Under the pieces are notes generated by a model. That model was not told where the DNA came from. It did not search any database and saw only the letters and a list, made by a program, of their open reading frames with translations. A program made the translations under genes and the position numbers. A stretch of 64,000 bases of DNA from Epithemia pelagica (taxonomy: Eukaryota > Protista > Bacillariophyta): assembly GCA_946965045.2 (NCBI GenBank), contig OX337241.1, positions 2,852,001 through 2,916,000 of the forward strand, given 5' to 3'. Position 1 is the stretch's first letter; the number at the start of each line of letters is the position of its first letter. This document shows positions 5,162 through 46,765 of the stretch, piece after piece.

Positions 5162-5872
5162 TAGAACTCTCACCGAAAATCATCGGTTAGGTTTGGCACC
5201 TCATCGGTTAGTCGAGTCCCGTGGCTTCAAACATCACCTACATCACCTACATCCACACTACATGCCTAGCTTCGCGCTAGCTCAACCTATATTTCGGTCG
5301 CATATACCAAAAAGTGAGAACAGATTGACGAACGTGCTATCAAGAATCAACTTTGGTCTTGATATCCCATCAACGGATGATCATCCGTTGAACATCCGAG
5401 CCTGACCTATGCCCTAAGCGTGCGCGCCCAAATTCGTCAAGATGCGCGCAAGAACTATCCGAGCGTGGCGATCATGTATCCGACCCAACGGTCTAAGTAC
5501 ACAAGGCACGAATCACGATCACGCGAGACCATATCATCGTTACCACTATTTCAAGATTGCAAACAAGGACGCGCCAACAAAACTACATATACCAACTTTA
5601 GCCAAGAATCGTTGAGGCTGTATATGATATACAAGCACATATACATGTTATATACCTCACATACATCAACTCCAACCATTCCAGACCTATCACCGCCAAG
5701 AACCTATTTCACACGATTAACAACAAGAGTGGAAATCTCACACACCAAACCTAGTAGTAAGCTCACAATCATTAACATTACCATATCATCACGTCTTCAG
5801 TGTCCTGACTATCCCTACGATAGAACCCTTGGGTTTCCTTTGTTCTCTGACCCGTGGAGAACCTTGGTATCA
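5159..5872 (+). repeat. putative 3' LTR of the first copia element
   Basis: Starts right after the PPT-like GTGGGGAG and ends at ...GGTATCA, where hAT coding sequence resumes. The 5' LTR is outside the window, so the boundaries cannot be confirmed. Confidence 0.45.
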
Positions 5873-7680
5873 GTTGGTAATCGATTGTGGCTCTTCTAGA
5901 GCGTGTACTGACGGAATTCTACTAACACCTTCCCAACCATCATGATACTGTATACAAGCGATTTGTTCTCCCCATTGATAGAAACTGTCGTGAGGAGCTG
6001 AAGCAAATGTTGCACAAGATTCAGGGTGGACTTAAAATTGCTGCTGACGGTGTGACAGCAAATGGTACGAGTACCATTCTGTACACAGTCTCCAAGGGTC
6101 CAGTCATTATGTTTTGTAGAGCCACGAGAATTCGAAACGAAGCACATGTGGCTGATGCAGAGGTGGAGGACATGGTGGATTTTATGGAGACAGCACGTCG
6201 CGACTTTGATACATCAGTGGTTTGTGTTGCTTGTGACAACGCAGCCAACAATATTGTGAAAGGAGCATGTGAGAAGTACAGAGAACGCAACAAATCAGAA
6301 CCTAGTATTCTCCATAACCGAGACTGTGCACGCTGCATAGATCTGGTGGCCAAAGATCTGGCAAAGGTTCCATGCATTGAGTCAGTCCTGACCGATGCTC
6401 AGTTACTCATGGAGTTTTCCACAACAGACAACGTCGATGGCATCCGGCACGAGCTTGTGCAAACTGGAGAGCTCCCTTGGTCATGTGGTCATGTGACAAA
6501 TTACTCCGACACCAGACTCAACAAAGTCGGCATGACACTCATGTCTATAACCAAACAGAGGCAGTTCTACGAGTGGTGCTGTAACAATCCACCTATGTTC
6601 ATGCAGTACTACAATACGAGGATCAAGAAGCGTCAGGAGAAGCTTGATGCTGCTCTCCGATTGGTCAATCGCGATTTCTGGGCCAAGCTTCATGTCCTAA
6701 TTCAACTATTCCAAGTCATTGAACATGGAACGAAGCTGGTATCAAGTGAGAAATTCCCACTGTCAGCATACTACCCACTGGTTGTGGCAATGAGGAACGA
6801 GATTCACCAAGTCATGAAGAACAGTAGTGGAACACGATCTTTTGATTCTCTGTTTGCAGTGCCTGGGGCAAAAGAATCAATTTTCGACAGTATTGATGTC
6901 CGCTTCAACTTCGCTGGTGTCCTACCCAATGGAAGGAAAGTTGGGCTACTTGACAAGTACCATGTGTGGGCCTATATTGTTGACCCATTCCGCCCAATGA
7001 TCCCATTCCGTCCGTTGCTTCCCTCCCTTGCTCGTTCTGTCCGAGAAGCAATCGACTTCTTTGTCCACGAGGATGGCTCAGCAACTCCAACAAACTCAGC
7101 AACTCCTCCTCCAGCTCCAGGTCCACCTCAATACAACCCAAACTATGACTATGGGGATGAAGATATTGCTGAGGTCCAACAAGCAATCCGTGAAATTGAG
7201 CGAGAATTGGAACCACCACAGAGCAACAAGACTGCTGTCGACAGGGAGCTTCGGTCGTACCTAGGTCGTTCTGGAGACTGGATTGACCTGTTCCACAAAG
7301 AAAAGGCACGGCCAACTATGGACAAGAATGCAGAAGAGCGTCAGCTGACCATTGAAATGGTTACCAAATGGCTCGAAGACATGGGATGGTATCAAGGACG
7401 GATGGACTTCTTCAGCATAGCACCGTCTACAAAGGTGTTTCCATTGCTGATTGAACCACTCCTATCTGTCAGGGCAACAGGGTCAATTTGTGTCGAGAGA
7501 ATTGCTAAACCTCTGAAAAATAATATTTGGAAAAAAATTCGTGCATCGCTTGGCCAGGACAAGGCTGTGGTTTGCCTCAGGGTTGGGCTCAACCTACGGT
7601 ATCTGCTGAACGTGCGGTCAACTATCCGCCAAGCAACCCATGAGCAATACCTTGATTGTGATCTCTTTGGATCTGTGTAA
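5873..7680 (+). mobile_element. hAT-family transposase (DUF659-like), 5'-truncated or interrupted
   Basis: ORF 6007..7680 has KIAADG (first D), ACDNAAN (second D), RDCARCIDL (C/DxxH-type motif with H to R), SDTRLN (TRW/F-like) and GSICVERIAK (catalytic E region). The frame extends to ~5875 through two TAA codons (5878, 5923). Confidence 0.8.
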
Positions 7681-7779
7681 GTCAATCAATGGTTTACCTT
7701 TGATATAAACGAGGACCTGTTGTTTTGTTGGTCTTTACTACGTCTTACGAAAAAATGAGGGAAGGAGCCGTATTTCATA

Positions 7780-7875
7780 GCTACCTAAACTACCTAAACT
7801 TCAAAACCTAAGTTTCACCTAAACTTCTTTAGAAACTACACTAAAAATCTGAGTACCTAAGTTTGATAGCTATAG
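7780..7875. repeat. short CCTAA(A/G) subterminal-type repeats downstream of the hAT transposase
   Basis: ctacctaaactacctaaact..aacctaagtttcacctaaact..tacctaagttt. A possible hAT terminus (...GAAAAGTTCATACTG, reverse complement CAGTATGAAC) lies at 10201-10217, after the intervening insertion. Confidence 0.45.
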
Positions 7876-10194
7876 CTGGGGATACCGATCCACGTACATC
7901 TAAGTAGGCTCAGTACAAAAGCTACGTAGAGTACATAAAATCCCATAGTACACGTCACCCCAGAAATGGTCGGAAGTCCAAAAAAACTCCACGATGACGG
8001 CGAGATCCGGTGATGCCGCATGCATTCACCCATGCATCGCAAAAACATCTGATCATTGTAAGTTGTTTGACTTTGTTCTTGTTACTGTGTTCTGCAGTTA
8101 CAGAAGATTTGTCCCGTTGGATCAAAAGGTATGCTCATTTTTCTGTGGTGCTGTAATCCAACGACCTTCCTAACTCTTTCATTTTTCAACGGTGACTGAA
8201 TCAAATTGAAAGCATAGTTGATCTAGTAGTAAAAAGTCTTATTCTACGAGCTCCACCTCAACAAAATTGCAGCCGCAGTAGCCCGTGCTATCAAGGCCTC
8301 CACTGTTTTTTCTATAGTGATTCTAGCGTCGTAGGAAGACCACTACGTTCATTTTGCACTGCATAACACCACCATGGACAACAAGAACCGCTAGAACCGC
8401 TGTGCACCTCCAACGAAAGGTGCTAGTACTCCTCCGACCATCCAGGATGCCTCAGAATCAAGTGTACCGTGATGGGTGAAAAGGGCGGCATTGAGTTGGC
8501 GAGTTTGATGGACCTACGGTGGTCTTCCATTTTGGGGTCGGAAGCTCGCGACGAGTAGATCGACTGTGGAGATGGATACCGATGGAATGAGCAAAGATTG
8601 CGGGGAGGGAAGTCACCTGAAGCTTTGAAATAGATGGATGAGGCATTGGAGAGCAGCAGCAAGGACACATGGCAATCAACTGGAGGATTCCGAAGCACAA
8701 ACATGACGAGAATCTCGGCAACAACAACGAAGCAAGTGACGATGAGAAGACGACGCCACTGGAGACAATGAATGCAGCAATTCACTTATCGTCCGTCCGC
8801 ATGCAACAATCAACTTCTTGTCTTAGCGTGGTCCGAGCACAGCAAATGAAAGCCTCGTCGGGTTGGTCCAAACGCTCCGAGGCAACAACAACAATCGCGA
8901 CAACAGCAAACAAGGAAGCAACAATACAAGATGACTATGTTTGACAGAATGCAAATTGAAATGGAGTCCGATGGCTGGAATCCTTTGGCATAGATCAGCA
9001 ATGCATGAAAGAGTGTTTACAGCAAACAAGGCAATCACACGGATCGCAATCAACAACAAAACAACAACAGAGTTCCGAACAACAACAAGCAACATGGATG
9101 CAACATGCAACAACTCCCCAAAGTCCTCCTACGAGTCCACTCTTGAACGCGCATCACCCTGCGACAGCGACAGCGACAACAAGGGGTGACAACGATAGCA
9201 AGTGCTGACAACGATAAATCAAAGGGCGAACGTAACAATCCACGATCAACCCCTCGTATCTCCCAAACGAATCATCTCCAAATCGGCAACAAGCGACGAA
9301 AATGACAAGCGGCGACAATGGCAACCACAACAAGCGGCGACAACCACAAAGACAGCAAGCGGTGACAATGACGACAACAACCCAAAGCTCGCTGAGGCCC
9401 AACGAAACACGCGGCGACAACCACCACAACAACAAGCGGTGACAACGACAACAACAATCAACTACTCGCTGCCGCCGAACGAAACACTCGGCGACGAGGA
9501 CAACACTCGGACAACAACAACCCCAATGCAACAACCCCAATGCAACAATCAACGATCGAACATGGGATGGTGGTGAAACAACAATCAACAAAAGAAAGGA
9601 TGGCGAACGAGGATAGATGAACAAGGATGGATGGACCAGCATGGATGAACGCGTAGCGAAAGCCTACGACACATACAAAGCTATCTAGATGCTTTCTATT
9701 GGTAGATGGTCTCTATTAGTAGCTGTTCATATTCATACTCGTAGAGAAGGCGGGTTGATTGTTGTGCCAGCGCCTCGTCTCCATGGTGAAAGTGGGTTGA
9801 TCGGTTTTAGTCCACCACTCGTACGAGAGTGTGAGTCGGCACGTGAAGGAGGGGCAATTCATTTTACTCTATGAAAATGAATGGTGTATTATATCTCGTT
9901 GGGCCGGAAGTGCCACCGAGAAGTGGAAACGTGAAGCACGGGCTACTGCGGCTGCAATTTTGTCGAGGTGGAGCTCGTAGAAGTGATTCAGTCAAGCCCA
10001 ATTATCCAGGAAGTTATTGCCATGGGGGTGATGGCCTCGACCATTGTCGAGTGATGGCTTCCGGATTGCATTGTTTCCCTTGGCGGCAAGTTTTCGAGTG
10101 TGACCATCCGCCCCACTTGTTACACAGACGAAAATAGTACTACGTAGATTAATGTACTGAGCCTACTTAGATGTACATGGATCGGTATCCCCAG
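7876..10194. mobile_element. non-autonomous TIR element (2.3 kb), superfamily unassigned
   Basis: 42-bp terminal inverted repeats CTGGGGATACCGATCCACGTACATCTAAGTAGGCTCAGTACA (7876-7917, 10153-10194; 1 mismatch). A second 48-bp inverted pair lies at 8242-8289 / 9935-9982. The interior is CAA/ACA low-complexity with no convincing ORF. Confidence 0.75.
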
Positions 10195-10667: not shown

Positions 10668-11601
10668 CTGGAGAATCAAACGAAGAAGGCTCCGACATCA
10701 AGACGAAAATGACGTGATATTTTGAAAATAATCTATTGGGAATGATCGCGTTGGATCCAAAGTCTATGGTTGCTATCTGATAAGAACAGGTAGACTTAGA
10801 ATTTAGAACCTATAGGAGTACTCCTACGTATTCTCCGAGAGTCTCGTTACGACCAACGACTTGGTTTCGAAATGCACAAGAGTAGCCCTTTCACTTGTAC
10901 TCCTAGTGAATAAGGAAGAACCAACAACGGTCTAGGGAGGTGTCAGTTTTGCGCACTGTTGAGAGGAGTCGTTGTGAATCGTCCAGGTTTCTAGGTAGCT
11001 TCGTAATTCTAATTCCTCCGTCGACAACATGCGGTGTGAAGCAACAGTAGCGGCTCAAGATTCGTTGCTTCGTTTCAGGATTTATCGAGAGGAGAAATCA
11101 TGTGGGGTCTTGGAGCGGTTTGCGCCCCAAACGAGGCGAGGCAATAGTCGGAGGCAATGATGTTGCTAGGAGCACACACCATGCACATTCACAGACACGG
11201 CAAAATTTCTCAAGCCTCACGAAACTCACCAAATCTCTACCGTTGTACCTCGAAGAACCAAATGGAACCTTTTGAGAATCACCAAACAGAAAAAAGTGAA
11301 TGGCTGCAGAAAGGTGTGACGATAAATGACGCATACAATGCCAGATGTCGATACCACCTACCACCTGGTGGAGTAAGCCTTGTGTACAAGTATTCCAACC
11401 GTTTCTATTTACATCATAGCTATGTAGGAGGATGGAACTAGCGGGGATCGCAAAATGCGTAGCGGCAAAGGGGACTCTTTGAGAGGTTTTGTACAAGTGA
11501 TACAAGAAGAAAGCGCAAATCGTAGTCCAGCGGTAATAGCATGTACAAGGGATGAATCTTCGTCACATGGACTTGACTGTCTTGCTCGGAGGCCAATGGT
11601 A

Positions 11602-12540
11602 TTAACAACACTCGGCAGCCATGCCCAAATACAAGGCAAAGGATCGGGACGGTCCGCTAATGTTTTCACAAACACGACGGAGGACGGCCTCTTGTAGCTC
11701 GTCACACCAATCCGTGCCCTTGATTTCCGACACGGCATCGAGCAACATGCCGCGTCGTCTATACTTGTCGCGGTGAAACTGTTTGGATACGAATTGCTCC
11801 AATCTAACCATTTCCAAAAACTCGTGACAGGGAAGGTCCAGTTCTTGCAGACTCTCTGTGGAAAGGTCCTGCTGCAGCAGCATGTTGCTGCTGCCCTGGA
11901 CACCATGACACTGGGGTAGAGCCGTCGTCTCGCAAATCTTGTTGTACGCTTGACGGATGGGACAAAGATTGGTCTTTGTTCCTGTGGCGGATCGATACTT
12001 CTTGAGGGTATCTTTGACTTCCAAAATCAAGGTAGCCTTGAAGCGATCGTAGTCCTCTTTGGAATACCATTGGGACGACTCGTTACTCTCTGGATCCAAT
12101 TCCTCTTGGAGATTCGCATCGGCAGGAACCGAATCGGTCCAGATTTCCGTCACTTCTTCAAAGCGGACTCGTGAATAGGGCCGTATTCTGCGGCGCTTGC
12201 CAATTTGCCGCTCGTTGGTGTCGTCGTGATCGAGATGGACGCCAGGGACCTTTGTGATATCGGGTTCCACACAAGCTCGTTCGGAGGAAGACAAGGGCGA
12301 TGGCGGATAACAAAGATGATGGTGTCGTGGTTGTTTGGAAGTTAGCAAAATCATCTTGTAAGTGCTGTCCTCGTTGTGGTTGTGTTTCCATAACAGAGGG
12401 ACAAAAAAATGAGTGCGTCTCACCGCCATCGACATCGACCCTACAGCACTTAAGCCAAAGAATGCTGTACTACTGCCCACAACGTCATCCGAACAACCAA
12501 TGATGTCATTGGCCGAAAATCTCAATTTTGTTAAATCCAA
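11602..12540 (-). CDS. hypothetical protein of the common diatom VRF...WYSxxDY...LE...aV family; true start may be a downstream Met (MILLTSKQP)
   Basis: 312-codon ORF with RVRFEEV, QWYSKEDYDRFK, RLEQFV..RRRGMLLDAV and a C-terminal helix SRSFALYLG. The family is recognised from motif pattern only; function unknown. Confidence 0.65.
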   Translation of the reverse strand: MDLTKLRFSANDIIGCSDDVVGSSTAFFGLSAVGSMSMAVRRTHFFVPLLWKHNHNEDSTYKMILLTSKQPRHHHLCYPPSPLSSSERACVEPDITKVPGVHLDHDDTNERQIGKRRRIRPYSRVRFEEVTEIWTDSVPADANLQEELDPESNESSQWYSKEDYDRFKATLILEVKDTLKKYRSATGTKTNLCPIRQAYNKICETTALPQCHGVQGSSNMLLQQDLSTESLQELDLPCHEFLEMVRLEQFVSKQFHRDKYRRRGMLLDAVSEIKGTDWCDELQEAVLRRVCENISGPSRSFALYLGMAAECC

Positions 12541-13702
12541 ACAGATTTAGGCAACAATCTGAATGAGTGTCTCTCGAACTGTACAGCCCCAAGATGCGTC
12601 ATCCTGAGTCCAGATAATTCCATGGGACTTTCCTGTTTTGCCGAAGCAAGTTGTTCTCCACAAAATGGACAATTTCAGACGCTTGCTCGGCGGCAACATC
12701 AATGGTGTTTTTCGATCTTGGCTCCATGATGTTGTATTATTATTATTCCTTGAAACCAACGAATTTCTCATTCACACTTCTTCCATCTTTCTCTTGCTTG
12801 TGGATGCATGCATCTTACTCCTATTGTTTATGGTTTCGACTGAAGAATCACGTACCATGATGTCTTGTTGATTGCTGAGTTTTGGCATGATATTATTTAG
12901 CATGGTCACTCGGGTTTTTCGTAAAAAAGTAGCTCCAGATAGTTTCATGCCTGGAGGAAGATGGACAAAGGAATTGTGTGTTGAATAGGACAGCTTTCCT
13001 GACTACGCTGACGAGCAACGTTTCCCCGTAGAACGTACCCTCCTGACGAGATAAAGCTAGAAGACAATCATGCACTTGGTCTCTCCAATTTCAGAAAAGC
13101 AAGGTGCCAACATCTAACAGACACAATGGGAAATGGGAATGCTCTAGGAGTTGGCCTTGGCCGCCCGTAGGAGTAGACTCAAAAGACTTCTCTCCGACTT
13201 GGGGGAGTACCTAGGTAGCTAGCTAGAGAGACAAAGAAACTACTCCTACCCTACAGATAGGGTAGTGTCGGTAGTGCCTGGTACCAGTAAAACTCAAAGA
13301 TTCAAATAGACCAGTTAAAATTTGAAACCTGATCTTTCGTTCTGTAGGCCATTCCATGCCCAAACGCCTTCAGCCTCTCGGAAGAAAGAGGCTCCTAAAC
13401 TACGAATGGCCTTTCGGAAGGATCTTCCCATCGAGCAAGACTGTCGACTACCATCCCTATCATCACTCCAACCAACGCAACAAACAGAGTACTGCTATAA
13501 AAGCAGATATTCCAGAAACTTTGTAAAACAGCGAACTAAAGAAACGGAAACGAAAATGAATGCAACAACTCCTACAGGAAGGTTGATCTGTGGCATCGTG
13601 TACGCTCTCGGAAGCTCGACTATACCAAACATTCTATTTCTTATGAGAGCAAACGAGTGCTTCTGGGCTGAATTTCGGGAAGCCAAGATAGTTGATATGT
13701 TC

Positions 13703-13833
13703 CTTCCTCTTCCATCCAGTTACCCCATCGCTTTGTGGATCTCTGGATGACTTTCTGATTAGGGCTTCCTCTTCCATCCAGTTACCCATATCTCTTTGTG
13801 GATCTCTGGATGACTTTCTGATTAGGGCTTCCT
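13703..13833. repeat. 62-63 bp tandem duplication (about 2.1 copies)
   Basis: cttcctcttccatccagttacc...tggatctctggatgactttctgattaggg starts at 13703 and again at 13765. Confidence 0.9.
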
Positions 13834-14080
13834 TGGTACACAGGCAATCCCCTCTTGGACTTGGATCTATGCCTAGCGATAGATCCCATCCTGTGGAAGC
13901 GGCGTCTCCTAGCTCCAGTAGCGTTTAGGCCCATCCTTAGGCTCTACCTGTGGTTGCTCGATCGCCTTCGATTCCAGGCCTTTGGAGGCACGACGAGCAG
14001 ACGTGAGAAGCACGCAGATCGAAATAGATCCACCCAAAACTTTGCGGAATTCCCACTCGCTCGCTGCTCGCTCGTCTAAT

Positions 14081-15932
14081 ATGGTGAATCCACCGCCGGA
14101 AAAAAAGGCCAAGACCGAGAGCAACAACGACAGCAAAGACAAAGACGACGATAAGAAATCAACGGATCATATTAGTGCCATGTGGAAAAACGGATCGGCT
14201 CCTATTGTACCTGGTACGTGCTGGTGACGAATGCAGGTTGTGTGTGTTTGGAACCGGAGGAAGAAGAAATGGCCTGTCCAGACCACCCAAGATTCCAGTT
14301 TGGGACTGGTGCGGACGACGACGACGACAGCAGCAGCGACAAGACGACGACGACACACGATCCATGACCACCACTGCTTGGAAGAAGAATATAAGATTCT
14401 GGAACATGGAGGAGAGTTCCTACTAGCGTAGAGAACGGATTCTCGTCCCATTCGACCGGATCTGGTAGTGGGATGGCTCGTGGTGTCACAGTGTCAATCG
14501 TGAAACTGTCCTTCCTTATGTTCTGTACCAAGCATGGGCAGCAGAGGGATGTGGTCCTTGCGCTGCGAATGCTGTTGCTTGGCTTGTGAAAATGGTTACA
14601 TCTGGTTGGAACCATGTTGGACTCTCACACGCGCATTGTTTGGTTTGTCATTCTTCTTCTTGTCATGGATGCTGTCGTTGCCCTGGGTGTCTCTCGTATA
14701 TCATTCTCCTTGGCCTTATGACTCGTCTGCTACGATGACTCTACTACGACGATTCCTAATAACACACAGTCACGGTCTTGACGGGCTTTTTGGGGTCGGG
14801 CAAGACGACCTTGTTAAATCACATTTTGTCGGATACGACGCACGGGATGAAATTTGCCGTGGTTGAAAATGAATTTGGCGAAGTCGGAGTGGACGAAAAC
14901 ATTTTGACGGAACAAGCGGATGAAGAAGTGATTGAAGTCATGAATGGATGCATTTGTTGTACGGTGCGAGGTGATTTGGTGACGGCCCTGAAACGCTTGT
15001 ACAAGCGCGTTGACAAGTTTAATGGCGTCATTATTGAAACGACGGGTCTGGCCGATCCGGCCCCCGTCGTCCAAACCTTTTTCGTCGATGAAGAAATTTC
15101 CAAACAATACCGATTGGACAGTGTCATTACCGTCGTGGATGCCAAGTACATTTTGACCCGCTTGGCCGAAGAAAAACCCGAGGGTGTCGAAAATGAAGCG
15201 GTCGAACAAGTGTGTTTTGCCGACAAGATTTTGCTCAACAAGGTGGATTTGGCCAAGGATGAAGACGAGTTGAAAAAGATTGAAGCGGAAATCAAAAAGT
15301 TGAATCCGACGGCCTCCATTTTGCGAACTCAACAAAGCAAATTGGATCCCAAGGAACTCTTGAACCTTCAAGCCTTTGAATTGAAACGTGTCTTGGACTT
15401 TGATCCCGAATTTTTGCAAGAAAATCAAGAACATTTGCACGATTCGTCCGTTACGTCCGTGGCCGTCAAGGTGACGGGCAATGTCAATATTACCCTCTTG
15501 GAACGTTGGATTCAGCGCCTGATTCAAGAAGAGGGAGCCAACCTGTACCGGTACAAGGGTGTCTTGGCCGTCAAGGGCATGGATGAAAAGTTTGTCTTTC
15601 AAGGCGTCGGCATGATGTTTAATGGTGGTTTTCAACCCATGCTATGGAAGGAACCCGAAGAGAAGCGCGAAAGTCGGTTCATTTTTATTGGCAAACATTT
15701 GGACCATGAATTTTTGCGCATGGGTTTTCATGCCTGTTTGGTGGGCCACGAATTGCGCTTTGCCATTGGCGATGAGGTGGAAGCCAATGTCGGCAAATTT
15801 GTCAAGGGCAAGGTGTTGAAACAGTGGGATGAAGGCAATGCCTATCGCATTGAATTGCATGATGGATCCAACACCCAAGTCTGGGCCCCCGTGGATATTG
15901 ATGTGTACATTCGAAAACCGCTGTCGGCCTAG
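14081..15932 (+). CDS. COG0523/CobW-family G3E metallochaperone GTPase with CobW_C and an extra C-terminal SH3-like domain; exons 14081-14213 and 14770-15932
   Basis: Splicing GTACGT(14214)...CTAAT..CAG(14769) rebuilds IVPVTVLTGFLGSGKTT (Walker A). Also present: ENEFGEV, GCICCTVRGDL (CxCC metal motif), IETTGLADP, LNKVD (G4), LYRYKGVL..FVFQGV (CobW_C). Confidence 0.92.
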
Positions 15933-37467: not shown

Positions 37468-38105
37468 ATGATTCCTCTTCAAGAACGTACTTCTCCTGGT
37501 TCTTCACCAAGTCTTGAAGACCTTCCTCGCTATACCATGGAAACCGGAATGAATGGAGAGCACGATGGCAGATCAATCGCCAAAGGTGGTGTGGCATGGC
37601 CTTTTCCGTGGCGTCTGCATGAATGTTTGGAGGCGGTTGAGAAGGAAGGCTTGCAGAGTATTGTCTCGTGGCAAGCACATGGTCGTTCCTTTACGGTGTA
37701 TCAACCGAAAAAGTTTGCGGAGCTCATCATGCCAAGGTACGCGTGACCGTGAGAATGGATGCTCGGAGCTTTTCTTCCGAAACGTATACTCATTTTCTCA
37801 TGTTCAACTGCAGATTCTTCAATCAAACAAAATATGCATCCTTCCAACGACAATTGAACCTTTATGGCTTTTATCGCTTCGCTCAGGGGAAGGATAAAGG
37901 AGCCTACTTTAATTTATGCTTTGTACGTGGACACCGCTCCTTGGTTCGCAACATGATCCGTCGCAAGATCAAGAACAACAAACACCTCAACAACAACAAG
38001 TCCTTGGTGGAGGATCATGACTTTTACCACCCGGCTTGGAAGAACCATTTTGAGTCTTGCGTACCCGAGGAATTGCGTCGTACTGTGCCCGATCCTAATA
38101 GGTAG
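37468..38105 (+). CDS. HSF-type DNA-binding protein; exons 37468-37736 and 37814-38105
   Basis: PFPWRLHECL..IVSWQAHGRSFTVYQPKKFAELIMPR|FFNQTKYASFQRQLNLYGF..GAYFNLCFVRG; 77-nt GTACGC..CTGCAG intron. Confidence 0.92.
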
Positions 38106-38210: not shown

Positions 38211-38651
38211 TTGAAGGCACGCCTCTTTCAAACGAGCTTTTATTCCTGTGGAGAAGGATCACTGTCGTTGGAGATGAATCGAGCGACAAGTCAGTCGATC
38301 ATTGACCGACAGTCCGTGAGAGATGACAAAGACAGTATCTATTCTGAGCTGAAGGAGCTTCTCGTTTTCCAGCACGAGAGGTCACTGCTTCAACTTCAAG
38401 AGACTTTTCATCTCCAAAACCAGGAGAAGGTGCGAAGACGCAGAGCACGGACCAGCTTTGCAGTATGGATTATTTTTGTGGCCATTCTTGCAGCAGTTGT
38501 TGCGAATGTCTACGAACGAGTAGGGGACTCGTCTTCATTGGATATGATGTGTGCACCAGCAATGCCAGGTACTCAGATCCAATCCGGAGACATTCTCAAG
38601 GCGCCCTGGTGGGACGGGCAGGTGCCGCCATTGTACATTGTCACGATGTGA
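38211..38651 (+). pseudogene. fragment of a coiled-coil/TM protein gene, or a distal HSF exon; ends near the MULE insertion
   Basis: 146-codon frame with a coiled coil, a TM helix (FAVWIIFVAILAAVV) and an APWW motif; no clear ATG. Confidence 0.35.
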
Positions 38652-38963
38652 AATGCGATGCGACAGACAGACCGTAGCTTTAGAAGGAGAGGTAGTCTTA
38701 GCGTAGGATTTAGGATTAGTCTTAGTCCAAACTTTAGGAGGGAGGATAATTTTGTGAGTTCGTTGTGAGCTCACAAAATTGTCCACAGCCTAGAGGGGAG
38801 TTTCTAGGGGTAGTTTCTTTTTTTGTCCACATTATGTCTCAATACTCATAATAGACCATAGTTAAATTTGATTTTGATTCTTCGGACATTATTCCGATGT
38901 CTCACTGGTACTAAATGGCAAATTTTGTGAGTTCAAGTTGTCGACCGTCTGATTTTTTGGCCA

Positions 38964-39308
38964 ATTTTGTGAGCTAAAGAACTCACTGGAACACATAAGA
39001 AAAAGTTTATTTTGTCCAATGTTGTGAGCTAAAGAACTCACTGGAACACAAAAGAAGAAAAAGTTGTGAGCTCGTCATGTGATATTGTATTGGGTCAAAA
39101 AAAGAATTCACCGTAGCACAAAAGAAGAAAAAGATGTGAGCTCGTCATCTGATAATGTATTGGGCCAAATAAAAGAATTCACCGGAACACAAAAGAAGAA
39201 AAAGATGTGAGCTCGTCATCTGATTTTTATTGGGCCTAGGTAAGGAACTCCCTGGAGCACAAAAGAAGAAAAAGATGTGAGCTCGTTATCTGATGTTGTA
39301 TTGGGCCA
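38964..39308. repeat. 70-71 bp subterminal tandem array (4 full copies plus a partial)
   Basis: cacaaaagaagaaaaag(a/t)tgtgagctcgt recurs at 39047, 39117, 39188 and 39258. Confidence 0.92.
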
Positions 39309-40274
39309 GCTACGTACTACTCTGAGGCACTAATCCCGACCATTTTTTCCTCTACTTCTCACAATCTGTGAGATTACAGAATAGAAATCTGTTGTGTTTT
39401 TTGTGCGATTGGTTTTTGTGTGCTGCGTGCTCATTTTTGAATTTATCTTGCAAGAAGCGTCACTAGACCCACCTGATATTGCATTGGGCCTCTTTGTGCT
39501 TGCCCCGTCCCGTAACTAGATACCTGGCATTGTGAGTTTTTCCACTGAATTGGGGGACATATCCGAGGTAACCAATCCCACGGCCAACCCAATTCCCAGT
39601 CCCCGCGAGACTGTGTAATCCCCCATCCCGTACGTGATTGTACAAGTAGGCCAACAGGCTGAAAAGAGGGCGATCCTTGCCAGACCGGCTGGATATCGTT
39701 AGGGGGGCGAAGTTAAGGTACTCAACAGGTACTACTTTGCGTGCTCCGGCACACCGCTTGTTTCCTAACAAAGCATCTGTTGCTGTCGCCTGCCAAGCGA
39801 CAAGGCTCTCTATCTTTGTGCTGTGGCAGGTTGGTCCATCTTGAGAATCTACACTTTTGCAATCGGACAAGCGTGGAATTCATCAAATTGGAACGATTTC
39901 AGTGCAGCCAGAGTAGCCAGAGTTCATCTTGCTCCTTACAATTCCTCAACTGTCTATGTCTGGAAATTGGGCTAGGGACTGGCAATCCCGGTGTGTGGAG
40001 ACAAGAACAGTTACCGTCAGAACTTGCTAGTTCTTGGTTACTTCCGAGTAGCTACCTAGCCTAAAGACTGCAGTGGAAGCGTGTCACACCTAATTAGCTT
40101 TGCCAGCCAAGCCCAGTGACAACTGCTCCCGGTACTGATTACATTCCATTGGTGTTTTGGCATTCTACTGCTGTGGATCACGCGTTTCGTCATTAGTCGT
40201 GACATCTCTACCCGACTGGTAAGGGAGAGATAACTACAGCAGGGAACTCAGTTGGTTAGTTTTCTGCATTAATC

Positions 40275-40754
40275 ATGTCTTCTTCTAGGAGTAATGCTCA
40301 AGACTCGGATGACGACAAAACAGACCAGCAGAATGACTCTGCCAACACTGCTAGTTCTACTGGTGTCGACCCTCTCATGACACTTCTCATGCAGAATCTT
40401 GCATCATCTGGAGAACAGTCATCCATGCTTTCCAGGACAATGTTCCAAGGTGTTGTCCAGTCATTATCACTCATAGAGATGGATAGAAATTTGCGACAAC
40501 GACGTGAATTGATGTCTCTTTCGCATATGCTTCCCAATAACCCAAATAGTGGTGTCATCTCTCAGCAAACTCATCCTGTTCGAGTAGGTAATGGAACATC
40601 CCTGACGGCGTCTCCACCAGTACGGGGCAATTTATTTCCAGAGAGTTGCACACCCATGAATGCCAATGACTCTACTAGCACCACAAGAAGGCATAGCTAC
40701 AGAAGGTGCCTGTCCAGAGACATCCAATATGGATGCGACAAAACATTTTATTAA
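40275..40754 (+). CDS. upstream ORF inside the MULE, overlapping the transposase ORF in another frame (possible N-terminal exon)
   Basis: 159-aa ATG-started ORF overlapping 40660..44001 by 95 nt; no recognisable domain. Confidence 0.4.
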   Translation: MSSSRSNAQDSDDDKTDQQNDSANTASSTGVDPLMTLLMQNLASSGEQSSMLSRTMFQGVVQSLSLIEMDRNLRQRRELMSLSHMLPNNPNSGVISQQTHPVRVGNGTSLTASPPVRGNLFPESCTPMNANDSTSTTRRHSYRRCLSRDIQYGCDKTFY

Positions 40755-43700
40755 ACATCATCAGCAGAATGTCAAAGATGATACAGCTTCCAACGCCGTG
40801 TCAGATGTGTATTGGCCAAACGGGAATACTAAGTATCTCTTAGACACCGGCCTTTTGTCCAATGATGGTAAGCCATACTTTGGATATGCATTATGTCATC
40901 TATATACCAAGACACATTCAAATGGGAATTCAAAACGGTATTTGTATTGTCTTGGTGTGATGGCATGTCAAGATCCAACATGTAATTTTCTGCAAAGACC
41001 AATGCAACCAAAATCCAAAAACCTCGGTGCCCCGCCACGTCCTGCAAAGTATGTTTGTCCGATTCATCCTGAGCTACCTCTGAAATGGATTGCATGTACT
41101 GGTGGAATCCAACAGGGAAACTCACGATCACAGAATAAAGAAGATGTCCCATGCATGATTGTTTGTGAGTTCATCAAAGACAAGAAGCAGTGGTTGATTG
41201 AGCATAAAGGGTCACACAATCATCCCAACCCACCAGTAACAAAACCATCTCCCCACGCAGTCAAACAGTTTAATGAAATTGTTACTGCCAACCCTTCCCT
41301 TGGTCCCCAGAAACTCCAAATGGGGTCATTGACAAATGATTCTGTTGTTGCCTTAGATGATGCATTTAGCACTATTAACCGTGTTAAGTACCTTCGGCAT
41401 AAGACACTTGGACGTACACCCATCAAAGCACAGGGGATTCATGGCAGCATTGGTTCCTTGCTCCAATTTACAAAGGACTTACCAGAAAAAACTTTTATAG
41501 TAAAAGCCGAGCTTGTGAAGCTAGATGAAGCGATTATAACGTTGCAAAGCAATTACATGAGAGAAATCCTACATGAAGCAAATAGCGGAATGCAATCTGA
41601 TACTGTTGAAGGAGTCATTGATGATCCTGAATTCACAGGAACAATTGACGTTCATTTTACTTCGGCATATGATTTCATCCTTGAAAGATGGGTGCCAGTT
41701 CTAATCTCATTAATTTTTGGAAGGAGCAAAAAGCATTATGAATCACATTGGAGAAGCCTTTTTCATAGCTATGGAGATTCAATTAACACGTCTTGGCAAT
41801 CCTTTGCAGCAATTTTCCCAGGAGTCACTGTAGATTGGTCAGATGCTCTTGGGATGTCTTTTATGGATGAACTCTACGACCATGCCACAATAACACTTGG
41901 TGACAAAGCCATCAACAAAAAAGATTTGTTAGCATTTCTGCAAAAATGCAACGTCCACTTTGAACGGTCTGTAACTTGCATTGAGCGAAATGGTGCTGTG
42001 GTCCCACCTTCAAAAACGGGTGATTTTTGCAAACTAATCCATACCTTTACCAACGTCAAATCAAAGTTCCATCACTATTGGAATGCGTGTCAGAAAATGA
42101 TGCAACATTTCCCAAAAGCTATGCCGTGGCTTCGTTGGTATTTACATCCGGACAGAGCACAAACATTCTTCCCTGCCTGCCAAAATTTTACATCATCACA
42201 GGCTGACAGATTTTCCAAACTATCGTCGTCAACAAATGCACAAGAAAATGTTGGAAAGCAGTTTCAGGATCTATTTCTAGTAAGAAACCGGAAAATGAGC
42301 GTCAATGAAGCAGTACTTAATGCATGGAAGTTTGTTAACAGGTTCGAGTGCGACAGAAGAAACTCTGCAAGAGGAATGCCTTTACAATATGCGCAATACC
42401 CACGTTCTTCAACCAAGCGAACAAAAAAGATGTCCAAAAATGATGGAAGAGCACCTGACACCAACAAGTCACTCAATTTGGAAAAAGAATCGAAAGAAGA
42501 CAAGGAAACTCATGTCAATATAAAGGATTTGTCAGATGGCAAACAACCAGAAATCCAGTGTAATATTTTGGACAAAGATAAAATGGAAAACAAAACGAGT
42601 TACAATGTGCAAACTTACCAAACGAAAGAAAACAAGGAGGTGCATGACAACAAACAAGGTCACATCTTCAATGGTCCATGCTGGGGAATGAAGCACAACA
42701 GTGTAATCAATATGTGCGCTCTGGATTGCTGGCTAGTGTTGATTGATGCTCCCTACCATGCGGGGCAATTATTGACTCCTTATCCAGAATTGTCAAATCA
42801 GTCCAGTTTTTTGTCGAATACATTTTCATTGTTGGATCAAAATAGAAGTGAGGAGGCCAAAGTTTTGTGGATGGACTTGTTCAATACATTTGAAATGCAA
42901 CAAGCTTTCGACAGACGCCAAGATTTTGTGAATTGCCTTGGCAATATCAATAGATACTATTGTCATTTCCCAAACACTCCAAATCCACTTTTTCAGGAAG
43001 AAGTACAAGGTGTCACAACTGTTCACCCAATGCAGATGAGCCTAACAATGTATGCAGAGCACAAATTTCATTGTTGTCGCCGCAAACGTTGTCGTTATAA
43101 TCAGCATGGAAAAATATCGACGACACACAAAAATGAATTCAATATTCAGCCAGAACATGAGGCAAGCTGGGAGGTAGTGGAAAGGGTGATGGTTGGAGAC
43201 CATTTGAGAAGTCATTTGAGAAGTGGAAGATGCAAATGTGGAAGTATTGGTTGGGTAGATAGAGCACACACTGTGACTTGGCCACATACAGTGGCCCTGG
43301 ATTTAACTACCGCGACAAGAAAATATAAAGATCTTTCGGTTCTCACACCACAGTTTGAAACAGATGACAAAGAGCTCATACTACGTGGTTGTATCCCTCT
43401 GGATGAGCAACGAGAACACTTCATAACTTTGATTAAGTGTGAAGATGGGTGGATGCAGTATGATGGTCTCAGTAATCCACACAAATTCAAGTTGTATTCA
43501 TGCGATGAAACCCAATTGATTATGGAAGGATCACCTAAAACTCTCGTTGTGGGAACATATGAAGTAACAGACAATAATGCAAGCAGTAAAGTACAGGATT
43601 TTGTTGATTGGGAGGAATTGTTTGATGTTGAGAGATCTGATCGCGTACCGCGAGATATAGGAGAATCATTGACAAAACTCTCAAGCAAAATTTTGTCACA

Positions 43701-44001
43701 ACAAAGGAAACACAAAATGAAAGGCAAGGACGACAAAAGGAAAAGGAAAGCAGAGAGCAGTGAAGAAAGTGACAACGTAAGTAGGAAAAAACCCAAAAGT
43801 GCATCAAAGCAACGCATTCCACATGGCTTTTCATTACGAGAGAACATACAAAGCCGTGGTCCAAGGCCAACTTGTCAGGGATGTGGCAAAAGAATTGAAT
43901 ATGGACAGAATACCATACGTCATAATTGGAAAGAAAAAAAGAACTTTAATTATAACACGATTTCCCAATATCATTGTGAAGCAACATTTTGCAAAAATTG
44001 A
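40660..44001 (+). CDS. MULE transposase: GCM-like Zn domain, DDE core, USP-like cysteine peptidase, PARP-type Zn finger
   Basis: GCM-like: WPNG..YCLGVMACQDPTC..RP..CPIH..C..HKGSHNHP (40813-41235). DDE: QSDT (41599), VDWSDA (41833), CNVHF (41947), STNAQEN (42244). Peptidase: NMCALDCWL (42715), EHFITL (43417), YDGL (43462). Zn finger: RPTCQGCGKRIEYG..YHC (43873-43977). Confidence 0.8.
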   Translation: MPMTLLAPQEGIATEGACPETSNMDATKHFIKHHQQNVKDDTASNAVSDVYWPNGNTKYLLDTGLLSNDGKPYFGYALCHLYTKTHSNGNSKRYLYCLGVMACQDPTCNFLQRPMQPKSKNLGAPPRPAKYVCPIHPELPLKWIACTGGIQQGNSRSQNKEDVPCMIVCEFIKDKKQWLIEHKGSHNHPNPPVTKPSPHAVKQFNEIVTANPSLGPQKLQMGSLTNDSVVALDDAFSTINRVKYLRHKTLGRTPIKAQGIHGSIGSLLQFTKDLPEKTFIVKAELVKLDEAIITLQSNYMREILHEANSGMQSDTVEGVIDDPEFTGTIDVHFTSAYDFILERWVPVLISLIFGRSKKHYESHWRSLFHSYGDSINTSWQSFAAIFPGVTVDWSDALGMSFMDELYDHATITLGDKAINKKDLLAFLQKCNVHFERSVTCIERNGAVVPPSKTGDFCKLIHTFTNVKSKFHHYWNACQKMMQHFPKAMPWLRWYLHPDRAQTFFPACQNFTSSQADRFSKLSSSTNAQENVGKQFQDLFLVRNRKMSVNEAVLNAWKFVNRFECDRRNSARGMPLQYAQYPRSSTKRTKKMSKNDGRAPDTNKSLNLEKESKEDKETHVNIKDLSDGKQPEIQCNILDKDKMENKTSYNVQTYQTKENKEVHDNKQGHIFNGPCWGMKHNSVINMCALDCWLVLIDAPYHAGQLLTPYPELSNQSSFLSNTFSLLDQNRSEEAKVLWMDLFNTFEMQQAFDRRQDFVNCLGNINRYYCHFPNTPNPLFQEEVQGVTTVHPMQMSLTMYAEHKFHCCRRKRCRYNQHGKISTTHKNEFNIQPEHEASWEVVERVMVGDHLRSHLRSGRCKCGSIGWVDRAHTVTWPHTVALDLTTATRKYKDLSVLTPQFETDDKELILRGCIPLDEQREHFITLIKCEDGWMQYDGLSNPHKFKLYSCDETQLIMEGSPKTLVVGTYEVTDNNASSKVQDFVDWEELFDVERSDRVPRDIGESLTKLSSKILSQQRKHKMKGKDDKRKRKAESSEESDNVSRKKPKSASKQRIPHGFSLRENIQSRGPRPTCQGCGKRIEYGQNTIRHNWKEKKNFNYNTISQYHCEATFCKN

Positions 44002-44463
44002 GCAGAGAGCATATGAGGTCATTCATGGAAAAGCGATGGGTTGAAGCAGAAGTGGTGAAAGTTGTTCGTGAGCTGCAACATGATGTCAGTCCAAAGTGAG
44101 GGAAAGAAACTTCTTACATAGCAATAACACTTACTACATACTATTAGGACATGCATGTGAAATGAAATGATCTTGTACTCCCGTTGTTGTTTCGTGTAGT
44201 ATATTCCAATTTTTCTCATTGGCAACTTAGTTGGAGGCTAGCTAGGACATACATGTGAAAAGAAGTGTTCTTATACCTCCATTGTTGCATCGTGTAGAAA
44301 TTCTAATTTTTGCAATTGGAATCTTAGTGGGAGGCAAGCTGGGTGATATAACAGTTCTCTCATTTTTTTGTCATAAACTCTCATTTACAAATCTAGCTTA
44401 TGACCGTACTAGGGGCTGTTGGGACACCTAGCATACCTATCATGGATAGCATGCATAGCTTCC

Positions 44464-44516
44464 AACTCACAACTCACAACTCTCGTAGCTCACAACTCAC
44501 AACTCACAACTCACAT
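44464..44516. repeat. (CTCACAA)n heptamer array at the MULE right end
   Basis: aactcacaactcacaactctcgtagctcacaactcacaactcacaactcaca; inverse of the left-end TTGTGAG motifs. Confidence 0.9.
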
Positions 44517-44568
44517 TTTTGTATCTCCCCAAACTTTAGTTACTCCTACAATAAATCCAGCCTGTCTC

Positions 44569-46765
44569 CTACCCCCAAGCAGGGGTGAGTCCAGGTCGCA
44601 CATAGGTCGTACCTAAAGGTACATCTGTATACTCACCCCCTTGGCTCGACCACCCAAAATTGGCGATTTTCCGACATTGATACAAATTGCATTTTACCTC
44701 AACGCATCCACCACGGTGCCAAACTAGTGAGGTCGATTGCATCCGCCGTGAAGGTTGTCCAACCGCACCCAAGCCCTTGTAAGCTTTCCCATCCTACCGA
44801 CGACACTTCTGCCTACTCGGTGTTGCCTTCAATTGTCCTTTCACGAGCATGGACAACCAGCAAAACACCACATTTCGCGACAACAACGAGGGAGATGAAG
44901 ATCCATCCACCGACTTCCCAAACCGCTCTATTACGTCCCTTCTCCGCCATCTCATTCTCTCCCCATAATACCGAGCGGCCTTCCAAAGGTCCAGACCTTC
45001 TGCACCAGGCACGAACCGGAACAACCATAAACCAAGACAAGACAAGACAAGGATGGAAGGTTGTGGTTGTCTCCATTGATAGTGCCATCTGATGCAGCTT
45101 TTATCTCTTCTGTCTGTGTGTCTCCTCGGTGAACGAAAGATAGCTTGAATCTTTCCTTTTGTTTCGTGATCTGAAATTGGTGCAGCGGCGGTCGTCTCGT
45201 CATTGGACACGCTTTCCCAACAACACCATGTCTTCCTTTCGTTCGGCCTCAATTCCCAGGACGAAGCAAAAGTAAACAGACGGTTCCATCGAGACTGCGT
45301 TGAAGAGCAAACGATTTTGTTTTGATATTCAGAGACAGTCCGCTTCTAGAGCTGTAAACCTCTGACATGCTCCAACTTGCAAAAGAATACTTGTTGATGC
45401 TCGACTTCCTTGGCTACTCTTGACTGGACCTCTAATGACCTACTCGCTTGCTGGATTTGGCTGTCAAGTCTATATTATTATAAGTACTATTACAGGATTT
45501 TCTTCTTCTCTTGTTGTATACAAAAATAGTAATTTCAAAAACAGGCAGCGCGAGCAAAAACACACCCTTCTCGTTTCACCATGGCTTGTTGGGCGGCCAA
45601 GGCCGAACCCAATTCTTCCGATTTTTGTTTGGACGACGACGACGACGAGTTCCAGGCATTGGCCAATTCTGGATTGGATTGCAACAATTGTTGTTATACC
45701 AACAATCAAGCCTTGTCCCTGCCATATCGTGGTTGTGCGGCGGTCATGGCCAATCGGTTTCACAGATCCGCCTCTCCACTTCTCGAGCCAAGCGAGCGCC
45801 TCCACATTTGGGCACAACGTGCCCAGACATTCACAAAGAAGATCCCGAACGGCGCCAGTCACAGAAACATACTTGTGCGCCACCAGAATGGCCGGCCGTA
45901 GTATCTGGCCGTTGATTCCCCACCAGGAGTCGTCGTCCAGTGAGCCCACTCATTCCACCACAAAATCCAACAAGGCTTGCGCAAGACATTTTGCGAGGCC
46001 CGATTGCGTGCCTCTCGAATTCTTTGTTTTCATATGGTGCCTTGATAACATTCCTCGTATCGTTCTTCCATGGAGTGCACTGCGTGTAAAGGGAATGTGT
46101 TCGCCATAAGAGAGAGGCATGTGATTCCAAACTAGATTGCAACTGCGCCTTGGAGTATCCGATGGAAGTTGTGGCACTGCTCCCGGTATTTGATGAATGG
46201 AATCCGTGGAGCGTCTTGTTGCGACCTTTGGACGGCCCGTGGTCAAAGATGATGACGAGAAACCAGAACTATGATACCATGGGTTGAGCCTGAGCGTTGG
46301 TCCGTCCCGTTGCTTTCGTTCGTCGTCCTCCGATTCATTTGAGGGAGCACCACGCAAAACCGCATCCTCCTGAGATGGTTCTCGGTTTCGGTTGCAAATG
46401 GGCGAAACGACGTGATACCGGGGGTTGAGGAGGAACGGGCCTGGGATGTAGGAGTGTTGTTGGTTTTGGCGATGCCAGTATCAAAACCTGCTCTTGCAGA
46501 TGCCACCGGCTGACTTGGGTCCACCTGAGCTTCATGGGCTTGTCGGGTTTGCTTCTGAGAAAGCTTCCGACGTTTATGTCAAGAAGAAGACATGATGTGG
46601 GTCGATTTGATACCTCTGCACCTCCACCACCGTAATGGATGCGTGGAGGTAGAATGAAATTTGTATCAATGTCGAGAGCGACCAGGTCGAGCCAAGGGGG
46701 TGAGTAGACGGATGCACATCGTGCATCCAATCACGCGTGACTGACTCACCCCTGCTTGGGGGTAG
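44569..46765. mobile_element. non-autonomous element with ~150-bp patchy TIRs carrying a decayed gene fragment
   Basis: Terminal 23 bp identical in inverted orientation (CTACCCCCAAGCAGGGGTGAGTC), with further matching blocks TACTCACCCCCTTGGCTCGACC and CGACATTGATACAAATT. Flanking direct repeat CCTGTCTC (44561-44568, 46766-46773), readable as 8, 10 or 12 bp. Confidence 0.85.

Follow-up and report, generated by a model that had tools for sequence, protein, structure and literature searches.

The element described here occupies positions 38738-44530 of a 64,000-nucleotide stretch of the genome of the diatom Epithemia pelagica (GenBank assembly GCA_946965045.2, contig OX337241.1, positions 2,852,001 to 2,916,000 of the forward strand), which is referred to as the window throughout. 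It is very probably a young, multi-copy, cut-and-paste transposon of the Mutator type (Mutator-like element, MULE) that belongs to a widespread and apparently undescribed clade with a four-module transposase, for which a mechanism of action may be proposed. The single polypeptide consists, in this order, of a GCM-type domain, a DDE core, a USP-fold peptidase, a basic linker, a PARP-type finger, and a short helix. An earlier note on this DNA, made from the letters alone, had read the locus as a fusion of GCM, DDE, USP-like, and PARP-type parts in a Mutator-like element, and independent tests now support each part of that reading.

Termini, Copies, and Insertion Site

The transposon (38738..44530, + strand) measures 5,793 bp and is enclosed by two direct copies of the 9-bp sequence AAACTTTAG (38729..38737 and 44531..44539), which can be read directly from the sequence and abut the element ends at 38738 and 44530 without a gap. 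This target-site duplication (TSD), already proposed in the earlier note, agrees with a second copy of the element and with an empty insertion site. The second copy was reached via its protein (P0001) and lies at 4261-10122 of a 1.5-Mb ENA contig (L001). It is 98.6% identical to the element, the similarity covers window positions 38736-44533 only and thus the proposed element within 2-3 bases, and it is flanked by a different 9-bp TSD of its own, GAAAGTGAG. The empty site was found in contigs of three publicly available runs (X1-X3) that derive from the same organism; these contigs were compared with the element plus 100 bp on either side (5,993 letters), and X1 and X2 are taken as genomic DNA, since contigs of >400 kb occur among them. 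In all three runs, a contig with a single copy of AAACTTTAG joins position 38726 to 44529, the exact joint being ambiguous by 11 letters. The 5802 bp skipped correspond to the element (5793) plus one copy of the TSD (9), which makes this a precise empty site. Together with the multi-copy nature of the family, these observations provide three independent lines of evidence that the element ends are real: a protein cluster at 90% identity comprises 22 members across many large contigs, four of them with a length of 1277 aa. Because contigs of the same organism hold the precise empty allele, a check already recommended in the earlier note, the insertion is polymorphic and represents a recent transposition event.

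The terminal inverted repeats (TIRs) are short and imperfect, comprising about 23 bp with 14/23 ungapped matches between the 5' end (38738..38760, + strand; GAGGGAG...TGTGAGTT) and the 3' end (44508..44530, - strand); classic MULE TIRs, with 100-200 bp, are longer. Next to them are arrays of the subterminal motif TGTGAGYT, with 11 copies on the left side (38753..39283, + strand; 10 of the copies on +) and six on the right (44464..44515), all of which are on the minus strand and inverted relative to the left array. The motif occurs 21 times in the window where 6.1 occurrences are expected, and in 100 shuffles the count of 21 was never reached. Such an inverted arrangement of subterminal motifs is typical for transposase-binding sites, and both the enrichment and the orientation of the arrays make them candidates for this role. 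Judged by the features of Mutator elements, the TSD has the typical length of 9 bp (range 8-11 bp) at two independent copies, and TIRs are present in the form of the imperfect 23-bp ends with inverted subterminal arrays. The 5' non-coding region further contains tandem repeats of about 70 bp (39031..39378, + strand), within which the window copy and L001 differ in length by 54 bp (at 39321). The element is AT-rich, as had been stated before, with a GC content of 0.417 (0.404 for its open reading frame, ORF) vs 0.481 for the window.

Several other joints in the contigs of X1-X3 skip internal parts of the element (40840-42790, 42271-42835, 43333-43529, and 39675-39846). None of them has GT..AG ends, and they probably reflect internally deleted, non-autonomous copies; a reading of the joints in run X3 as introns was dropped, as their ends are non-canonical and look like those of deleted copies. 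Another joint in these contigs connects 38758 to 44512, so that 21 bp from the start of the element and 19 bp from its end remain with CTCACA in between, and represents either an ends-only derivative of about 46 bp or a graph artefact produced via GTGAG repeats.

The Transposase Gene and Its Frameshifts

The ORF of the window copy (40660..44001, + strand, 1113 aa) had been regarded as intact, but turned out to be the middle part of a longer gene. The full-length version comprises 1277 codons in the paralogues P0177, P0180, P0187, and P0189 and starts with MSSSRSNAQ.... A tblastn comparison with the intact P0177 places the gene at 40275..44096 (+ strand) in three different frames, since residues 1-134 correspond to 40275-40676, residues 136-1240 to 40672-43986, and residues 1239-1277 to 43980-44096. 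Two deletions account for the changes of frame, namely one of 8 bp (TCCAGTTT) after 40675 (40675..40676) and one of a single G after 43987 (43987..43988). The missing bases are present in the second copy and in the run contigs, and the two sites do not consist of simple homopolymer tracts. Through the second deletion, the Cys representing the last zinc ligand in the C-terminal finger is shifted and about 38 C-terminal residues including the helix are lost, while the other frame remains readable to 44096. In addition, the window copy is the only one among 32 aligned C-terminal modules (C-modules) with a Met, at position 685, instead of Thr or Ser before the catalytic Cys of the peptidase, although it keeps all catalytic residues of this module.

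The window copy differs from L001 by 33 nonsynonymous and seven synonymous changes, and the resulting pN/pS value of 1.21 at about 1.2% divergence indicates neutral drift of young copies. The two frameshifting deletions, the exchange of Thr to Met beside the catalytic Cys, and this neutral drift mark the window copy as a dead passenger. The self-contained transposase envisaged previously is thus not encoded by this copy, and because of the frameshifts any movement of it must be effected in trans by intact paralogues. All motifs listed in the earlier note are nevertheless found at the expected places of the ORF (CLGV..C..C, D314, D392, C430-x2-H433, TNAQE529, NMC686ALD, EH920F, YD935G, CQGC at 1072-1075, and H1105). 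The L001 copy is also imperfect, carrying a 2-bp deletion (window position 40411; about 5853-6062 of L001) which cuts off the first 50 codons or so, so that the called protein P0001 consists of 1227 instead of 1277 aa.

Transposase-derived transcription factors of the GCM/WRKY and FAR1 types are common (PMC1702500), and the locus might by analogy be a host gene domesticated from a transposase rather than a mobile element. This is extremely improbable, however, in view of the TSDs at two independent copies, the precise empty allele, the presence of over 20 near-identical copies, some of them with deletions, the neutral pN/pS value, and the frameshifts in the window copy, all of which argue for a transposon.

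The DDE Core and Affiliation to the Mutator Superfamily

The catalytic core of the Mutator/IS256 type (41257..42489, + strand) contains the putative active-site residues D314 (41599-41601), D392 (41833-41835), and E529 (42244-42246), and the CxxH motif C430/H433 (41947-41958), which is situated between D392 and E529. When 45 long members of the family were aligned, D314, D392, C430, H433, T525, N526, Q528, and E529, as well as C686 of the peptidase module, proved to be present in at least 90% of the sequences. An AlphaFold model of residues 40-630 (pLDDT 83.2) retrieved the IS256-family transposase ISCth4 as best match in the PDB (Foldseek, 3e-6), followed by a GCM domain and then by the hAT transposase Hermes. 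IS256 is the bacterial relative of Mutator. Among the fold neighbours of the core in the ESM Atlas were MULE, FAR1, SWIM, and FLYWCH proteins with TM values of up to 0.55, and a language-model feature search placed a MULE cluster first (0.94) and a "NOF-FB transposable element protein" second (0.90, 174 shared features). Both the near-invariant residues and the best predicted fold match agree with the MULE core (D, D, CxxH, TNAQE) noted before, and the combination of DDE residues, a C/DxxH motif in the interval from the second D to the E, and an IS256-related RNase H-like fold is that of Mutator transposases. One weak match to Transposase_mut (PF00872; 0.0022) was recorded among the 45 long members. 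The core ends in the motif NDGRAPDT (window 42439-42462). This motif, situated ahead of the USP module, is strongly conserved throughout the family.

The present element resembles MULE/MuDR and IS256 (ISCth4) elements in the 9-bp TSD, the TIRs with subterminal repeats, the N-terminal zinc domain of the WRKY-GCM1 superfamily, the position of the CxxH motif after the second D and before the E, and the predicted fold, which is closest to theirs. In contrast to MULE/MuDR, it has short TIRs and no SWIM or CCHC finger behind the core, escapes the Pfam MULE model, and carries a peptidase of the USP fold together with a PARP-like finger. The relation to the Drosophila element FB-NOF (DNA/MULE-NOF in RepeatMasker) consists solely in the feature-search score of 0.90, and the present termini are not long foldback arrays as in FB-NOF.

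The GCM Domain

The N-terminal zinc domain (residues about 48-195 of the ORF; 40801..41244, + strand) is of the GCM type. Its residues C97, C103, C108, C133, C146, H186, and H188 are invariant and H136 and H182 near-invariant in the family. A profile of 32 N-terminal modules (N-modules) matched mouse GCM1 (1odh_A) with E=3.5e-12 over residues 24-170 of the 174-residue chain, and a profile from a second alignment (A4) gave 1.9e-13 with the same structure (PDB 1odh). The AlphaFold model of residues 40-630 likewise retrieved 1odh in Foldseek (2.6e-5, TM 0.54 by target), and the Pfam model GCM (PF03615) matched 11/32 homologous modules (best value 2.7e-9); the module of the window itself gave no match. 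The GCM-like module postulated earlier is thereby corroborated by profile, predicted structure, and Pfam matches of homologues.

Within the WRKY-GCM1 superfamily, Babu et al. (2006; PMC1702500) related the transposases of MULEs to the "HxC" and "insert-containing/FAR1" families and placed GCM1 in a family of its own. Since GCM1 was thus kept apart from the MULEs, the occurrence of a GCM-proper domain in a MULE clade extends that picture. The similarity to the animal GCM domain (PF03615/1odh) covers most of the length and the pattern of Cys and His ligands, but the animal proteins are transcription factors, whereas the present domain is part of a transposase and lies below Pfam detection in the window protein. 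As the domain is GCM-proper and not a generic WRKY-like finger, the clade may even be the transposon source from which the animal GCM factors were domesticated, although we regard this origin as doubtful. In any case, the finding of a bona fide GCM domain in non-animal transposases is relevant to the origin of the GCM transcription factors.

The USP-Fold Peptidase Module

The second half of the protein contains a predicted cysteine peptidase of the USP fold (residues 666-971; 42655..43572, + strand), the modelled limits of which agree with the coordinates 42660-43560 given before. Its characteristic residues are Asn684, Cys686 (42715-42717), His920 (43417-43419), and Asp935 (43462-43464), complemented by a putative zinc ribbon with Cys805, Cys811, Cys860, and a fourth conserved Cys position seen in the homologues. 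A profile of 32 C-modules matched USP46 (E=4.7e-7), USP12, and USPL1 (1e-4). From the Cys box to the His box, the alignment places NTC on GNTC, two Cys pairs on the USP zinc ribbon, and HF...YDG on HY...FDD. The module was modelled on residues 742-1227 of P0001 (pLDDT 78.7) in place of the window protein, because the finger of the latter is truncated. Foldseek returned 365 matches to this model at E<=1e-3, and the 50 matches listed were all of the USP fold. In a VIA-align comparison with USP46, 253 residues of the model (7-311) were aligned with a Z value of 15.4, and UCH clusters of the ESM Atlas were found as well. Among homologues that are only 15-30% identical, the catalytic Cys is conserved in 31/31, the His in 30/30, the Asp or Asn in 29/30, and the oxyanion Asn in 29/31 sequences, while three zinc-ribbon Cys columns are conserved in 32/32 and the fourth, near-invariant one aligns to the Cys pairs of the zinc ribbon of USP46. 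The papain-fold triad Cys-His-Asp suggested earlier is therefore borne out by the USP fold and by an essentially invariant triad in 32 divergent homologues; a missing papain fold or an unconserved triad had been named beforehand as the outcomes that would contradict it, and neither was observed. Like USP46, USP12, and USPL1, the module exhibits a predicted thumb-palm-fingers fold (Z about 15), an N-T-C Cys box, a His box, an Asp, and a four-Cys zinc ribbon; unlike these enzymes, with which it shares only about 10-13% identity, it escapes the Pfam models UCH, UCH_1, and Peptidase_C98 and is embedded in a transposase.

As to the substrate, the module might remove SUMO or another ubiquitin-like modifier (UBL) in the manner of USPL1, a USP-fold SUMO isopeptidase, in which case its function would parallel that of the Ulp1 domains in plant MULEs. 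The profile match to USPL1 and the structural scores of USPL1-SUMO complexes, which equal those of USP46 (Z 15.0-15.2), are consistent with this assignment, as are a clade member carrying a true Ulp1/C48 domain (P0072) and the known Ulp1-containing plant MULEs and Ginger1 elements with Ulp1 or OTU domains (PMC2836005). We consider it somewhat improbable, since the best sequence matches are the ubiquitin-specific USP46 and USP12 and the similarity in fold cannot distinguish between ubiquitin and SUMO as substrates. No match to Peptidase_C48 was obtained with Pfam in the element of the window; P0072 is the only relative in which this domain was found.

Alternatively, the peptidase might cut the transposase in cis into separate DNA-binding, catalytic, and finger proteins, as suggested for OTU-MULE fusions of Medicago (Babu et al., 2006; PMC1702500) and as seen with viral papain-like proteases of the USP fold. 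The long, poorly conserved linkers between the modules, which are predicted with low confidence, would suit such processing. However, no conserved Gly-Gly or LxGG-like site was seen in the linkers of the aligned homologues, and the conserved inter-module motifs NDGRAPDT and RIPxGxS are unlike USP cleavage sites, which renders cleavage in cis unlikely. A catalytically dead scaffold binding ubiquitin or a partner protein, comparable to the pseudo-USP Pan2, appears less probable still. Pan2 pseudo-UCH structures are indeed among the top Foldseek matches, and the module is too divergent for the Pfam UCH model, but pseudo-USPs have lost catalytic residues, whereas the Cys, His, Asp/Asn, and oxyanion Asn are essentially invariant in the 32 homologues, a pattern expected of active enzymes. 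We retain the reading of the module as a putatively active deconjugating peptidase.

The Basic Linker and the PARP-Type Finger

The peptidase module is followed by a basic linker resembling a nuclear localization signal (KDDKRKRK ... SRKKPKS; 43726..43806, + strand), as read from the translation, and by a zinc finger with the ligands Cys1072-x2-Cys1075-x29-His1105 (43843..43998, + strand), which is truncated in the window copy by the second frameshift. In an alignment of 23 fingers, G, C-x2-C, and H are invariant, and the last C is nearly so. The spacing is C-x2-C-x29-H-x4-C in the branch of the element and the canonical C-x2-C-x28-30-H-x2-C in a sister branch. With E=3.2e-6, the finger profile matched constructs of PARP1 containing two fingers (F1 and F2), each of which aligns to it. 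PARP1 and DNA ligase III use fingers of this type to sense DNA breaks. The similarity to the fingers of these proteins (PF00645) extends to the C-x2-C...H...C ligands, the spacing of about 29 residues, and the flanking residues, while the present finger differs by the spacing H-x4-C, by its occurrence as a single copy, and by a conserved K-x-W helix behind it.

These deviations leave room for a general zinc finger which binds the DNA of the transposon ends, RNA, or a protein partner and resembles zf-PARP in structure only. Although zf-PARP was the commonest Pfam match, with 11/23 fingers, its scores stayed low (best E value 0.007; 14.4 bits for P0001 vs a cut-off of 39.3), the branch of the element shows the divergent H-x4-C spacing, and C2H2 fingers and the ribosomal protein eL34 also appeared at weak E-values. 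On the other hand, PARP1 is the top match by four orders of magnitude with both of its fingers aligning, the alignment spans the flanking G..P.C..C and YH..C context, and the sister branch exhibits the exact PARP spacing, and so a general finger is a minor, if real, possibility. The finger is best described as PARP-type by homology at the profile level, without being a certified member of zf-PARP. Of the finger CxxC...HxxC proposed in the earlier note, the relation to PARP1 has thus been retained through the profile match, while the H-x2-C spacing does not apply to this branch and Pfam remains below threshold.

Evidence Weighing Against the Assignment

Several observations detract from the assignments made above. 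No curated Pfam model matches the window protein; the Pfam MULE model (PF10551) was not matched by any of the 45 long members at E<=0.01, and UCH, UCH_1, and Peptidase_C98 were matched by 0/32 C-modules at E<=1, with one other long member of the family matching UCH at 1.8e-6. Because the Pfam models for MULE and UCH remain silent, the assignments to MULE and USP are based on profiles, motifs, and predicted folds, and membership in the Mutator superfamily in particular is derived from motifs, fold, and the 9-bp TSD; the failure of UCH to detect any of the 32 C-modules also implies that they constitute a very divergent USP-fold lineage. The finger stays below the Pfam gathering threshold throughout, and in the branch of the element its ligands deviate from the zf-PARP (PF00645) pattern C-x2-C-x(28,30)-H-x2-C. 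The structural model of the C-module was obtained with P0001, which is 97% identical to the window protein and not the window protein itself, and the contigs of X1-X3 exhibit no canonical intron or transcript end at the element. Finally, the roles considered for the GCM, USP, and finger modules are those of their respective families.

Distribution of the Clade

An exhaustive phmmer search yielded 934 representatives (clustered at 50%) at E<=1e-3, of which 102 remained at the stricter cut-off of E<=1e-30. When the fetched homologues were analysed with hidden Markov models (HMMs) of the modules, all four modules were detected in 18 of 36 proteins with a length of 900 aa or more, self excluded, while seven contained GCM, core, and USP, two contained core, USP, and finger, and nine were devoid of the USP module, which was present in 27/36 overall. 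As judged from these combinations, the four-module architecture is clade-wide and widespread rather than specific for diatoms. The taxonomic range relies on labels of the ESM Atlas (Basidiomycota, Arthropoda) and on metagenome and transcriptome contigs. A word-indexed protein search with the C-terminal region returned the self match only, and a full-alignment search added few named proteins, the sole named relative being a hypothetical protein of Melampsora. As the family is invisible to annotation based on Pfam, its members will appear as "hypothetical protein" in genome projects.

The distant four-module relative P0168 is encoded in a bounded unit of 4.5 kb (about 3892-8374 of contig L003; also on L004 and L005) with TIRs of about 38 bp and subterminal ACACAGTG repeats. 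The unit is identical in three metagenome samples with unrelated flanks. No TSD was readable at the unit on L003-L005; the TIRs are clear. It also harbors a conserved additional ORF of 113 aa upstream of the transposase gene (4129-4470 of L003). Another relative, P0072 (1715 aa), contains at residues 1354-1529 a true Ulp1/Peptidase_C48 domain that scores above threshold (5e-17); partial USP-like matches occur as well, so that two types of UBL peptidases are combined in one transposase.

Relation to Other Transposons With Peptidase Domains

Peptidases are known from several types of transposons, namely OTU domains from Medicago MULEs, Helitrons, and Ginger1, Ulp1 domains from plant MULEs and Ginger1, and VTD domains from Helentrons (PMC1702500, PMC2836005, PMC9741609). 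The present clade shares with Ulp1-MULEs (Kaonashi), OTU-MULEs, Ginger1, and Helitrons/Helentrons a papain-like peptidase for ubiquitin or UBLs that is either fused to the transposition enzyme or accompanies it, but its peptidase has a USP (C19-like) fold instead of a C48, OTU, or VTD fold and is coupled to a PARP-type finger. It thereby adds a third independent peptidase fold to the transposons carrying ubiquitin/SUMO peptidases. Surveys of MULEs mention neither a USP-fold peptidase nor a PARP-like finger (PMC6446971, PMC13359780, PMC1702500), and no description of such modules in MULE transposases was found in the literature searched, although the family may already be catalogued in Repbase or Dfam. 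No report of a USP-fold domain in a DDE transposase was found there either.

The MULEs known from diatoms are of the SWIM type, including the "MULE-Diatoms" of Dupeyron et al. (2019; PMC6446971). Like the present element, the active MULE of Phaeodactylum tricornutum (10.1101/2023.01.02.522487) is of the Mutator type, has a 9-bp TSD, and is linked to the ubiquitin system. It nevertheless represents a different family, as it is a 3.7-kb element of the SWIM type with TIRs of about 200 bp and a separate ORF for a UBR-type E3-ligase-like protein (10.1101/2023.01.02.522487), and is devoid of GCM, USP, and PARP-like finger modules.

A Possible Mechanism

From the families of its modules, the following mode of action may be envisaged for the transposase. 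The GCM domain would serve to recognize the TGTGAGYT motifs of the inverted subterminal arrays, excision and integration of the element would be the task of the DDE core, and the PARP-like finger might hold the protein on the nicks, gaps, and double-strand ends made by transposition. The USP module might then remove ubiquitin or a ubiquitin-like modifier at the transposition lesion, either from the transposase itself, which would be protected from degradation, or from local chromatin carrying damage or silencing marks, in which case repair could be steered or repression avoided. The enzyme may in this way act as a "repair-site deconjugase", with the finger docking on breaks or 9-nt gaps and the USP module stripping ubiquitin or UBLs so that repair is steered and repression escaped. 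This proposal is tentative and, like the separate one of a transposon source for the animal GCM factors, fairly improbable in its specific form; the more general anti-silencing or repair-hijacking function considered earlier is plausible. If correct, deconjugation at the lesion would be a form of counter-defence that has not been recognised before in DNA transposons. The coupling of a peptidase to a finger of the break-sensor type, in a polypeptide which itself makes breaks, at least turns this into a testable hypothesis. Since the insertion is polymorphic, the element has been active recently in a culturable alga, and material for such studies exists in the form of the intact 1277-aa copies.

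Genomic Surroundings

The second copy on L001 adjoins an ORF of a reverse-transcriptase/RNase H retroelement (11515-15429, - strand), and the gene for the relative P0002 adjoins a piggyBac-like gene (DDE_Tnp_1_7; 5683-6852 of L002, - strand), which places both copies in transposon-rich regions. Upstream of the element in the window, a gene for an HSF-type DNA-binding domain is present in two ORF pieces (37468-38105, + strand; Pfam HSF_DNA-bind, 3e-5 and 1.5e-7), followed by an ORF (38211-38651) ending about 90 bp before the transposon. Downstream, many contigs of X1-X3 diverge from the window at 44569-44571, with loose ends before and behind, indicating that other repeated sequence starts about 40 bp behind the insertion.

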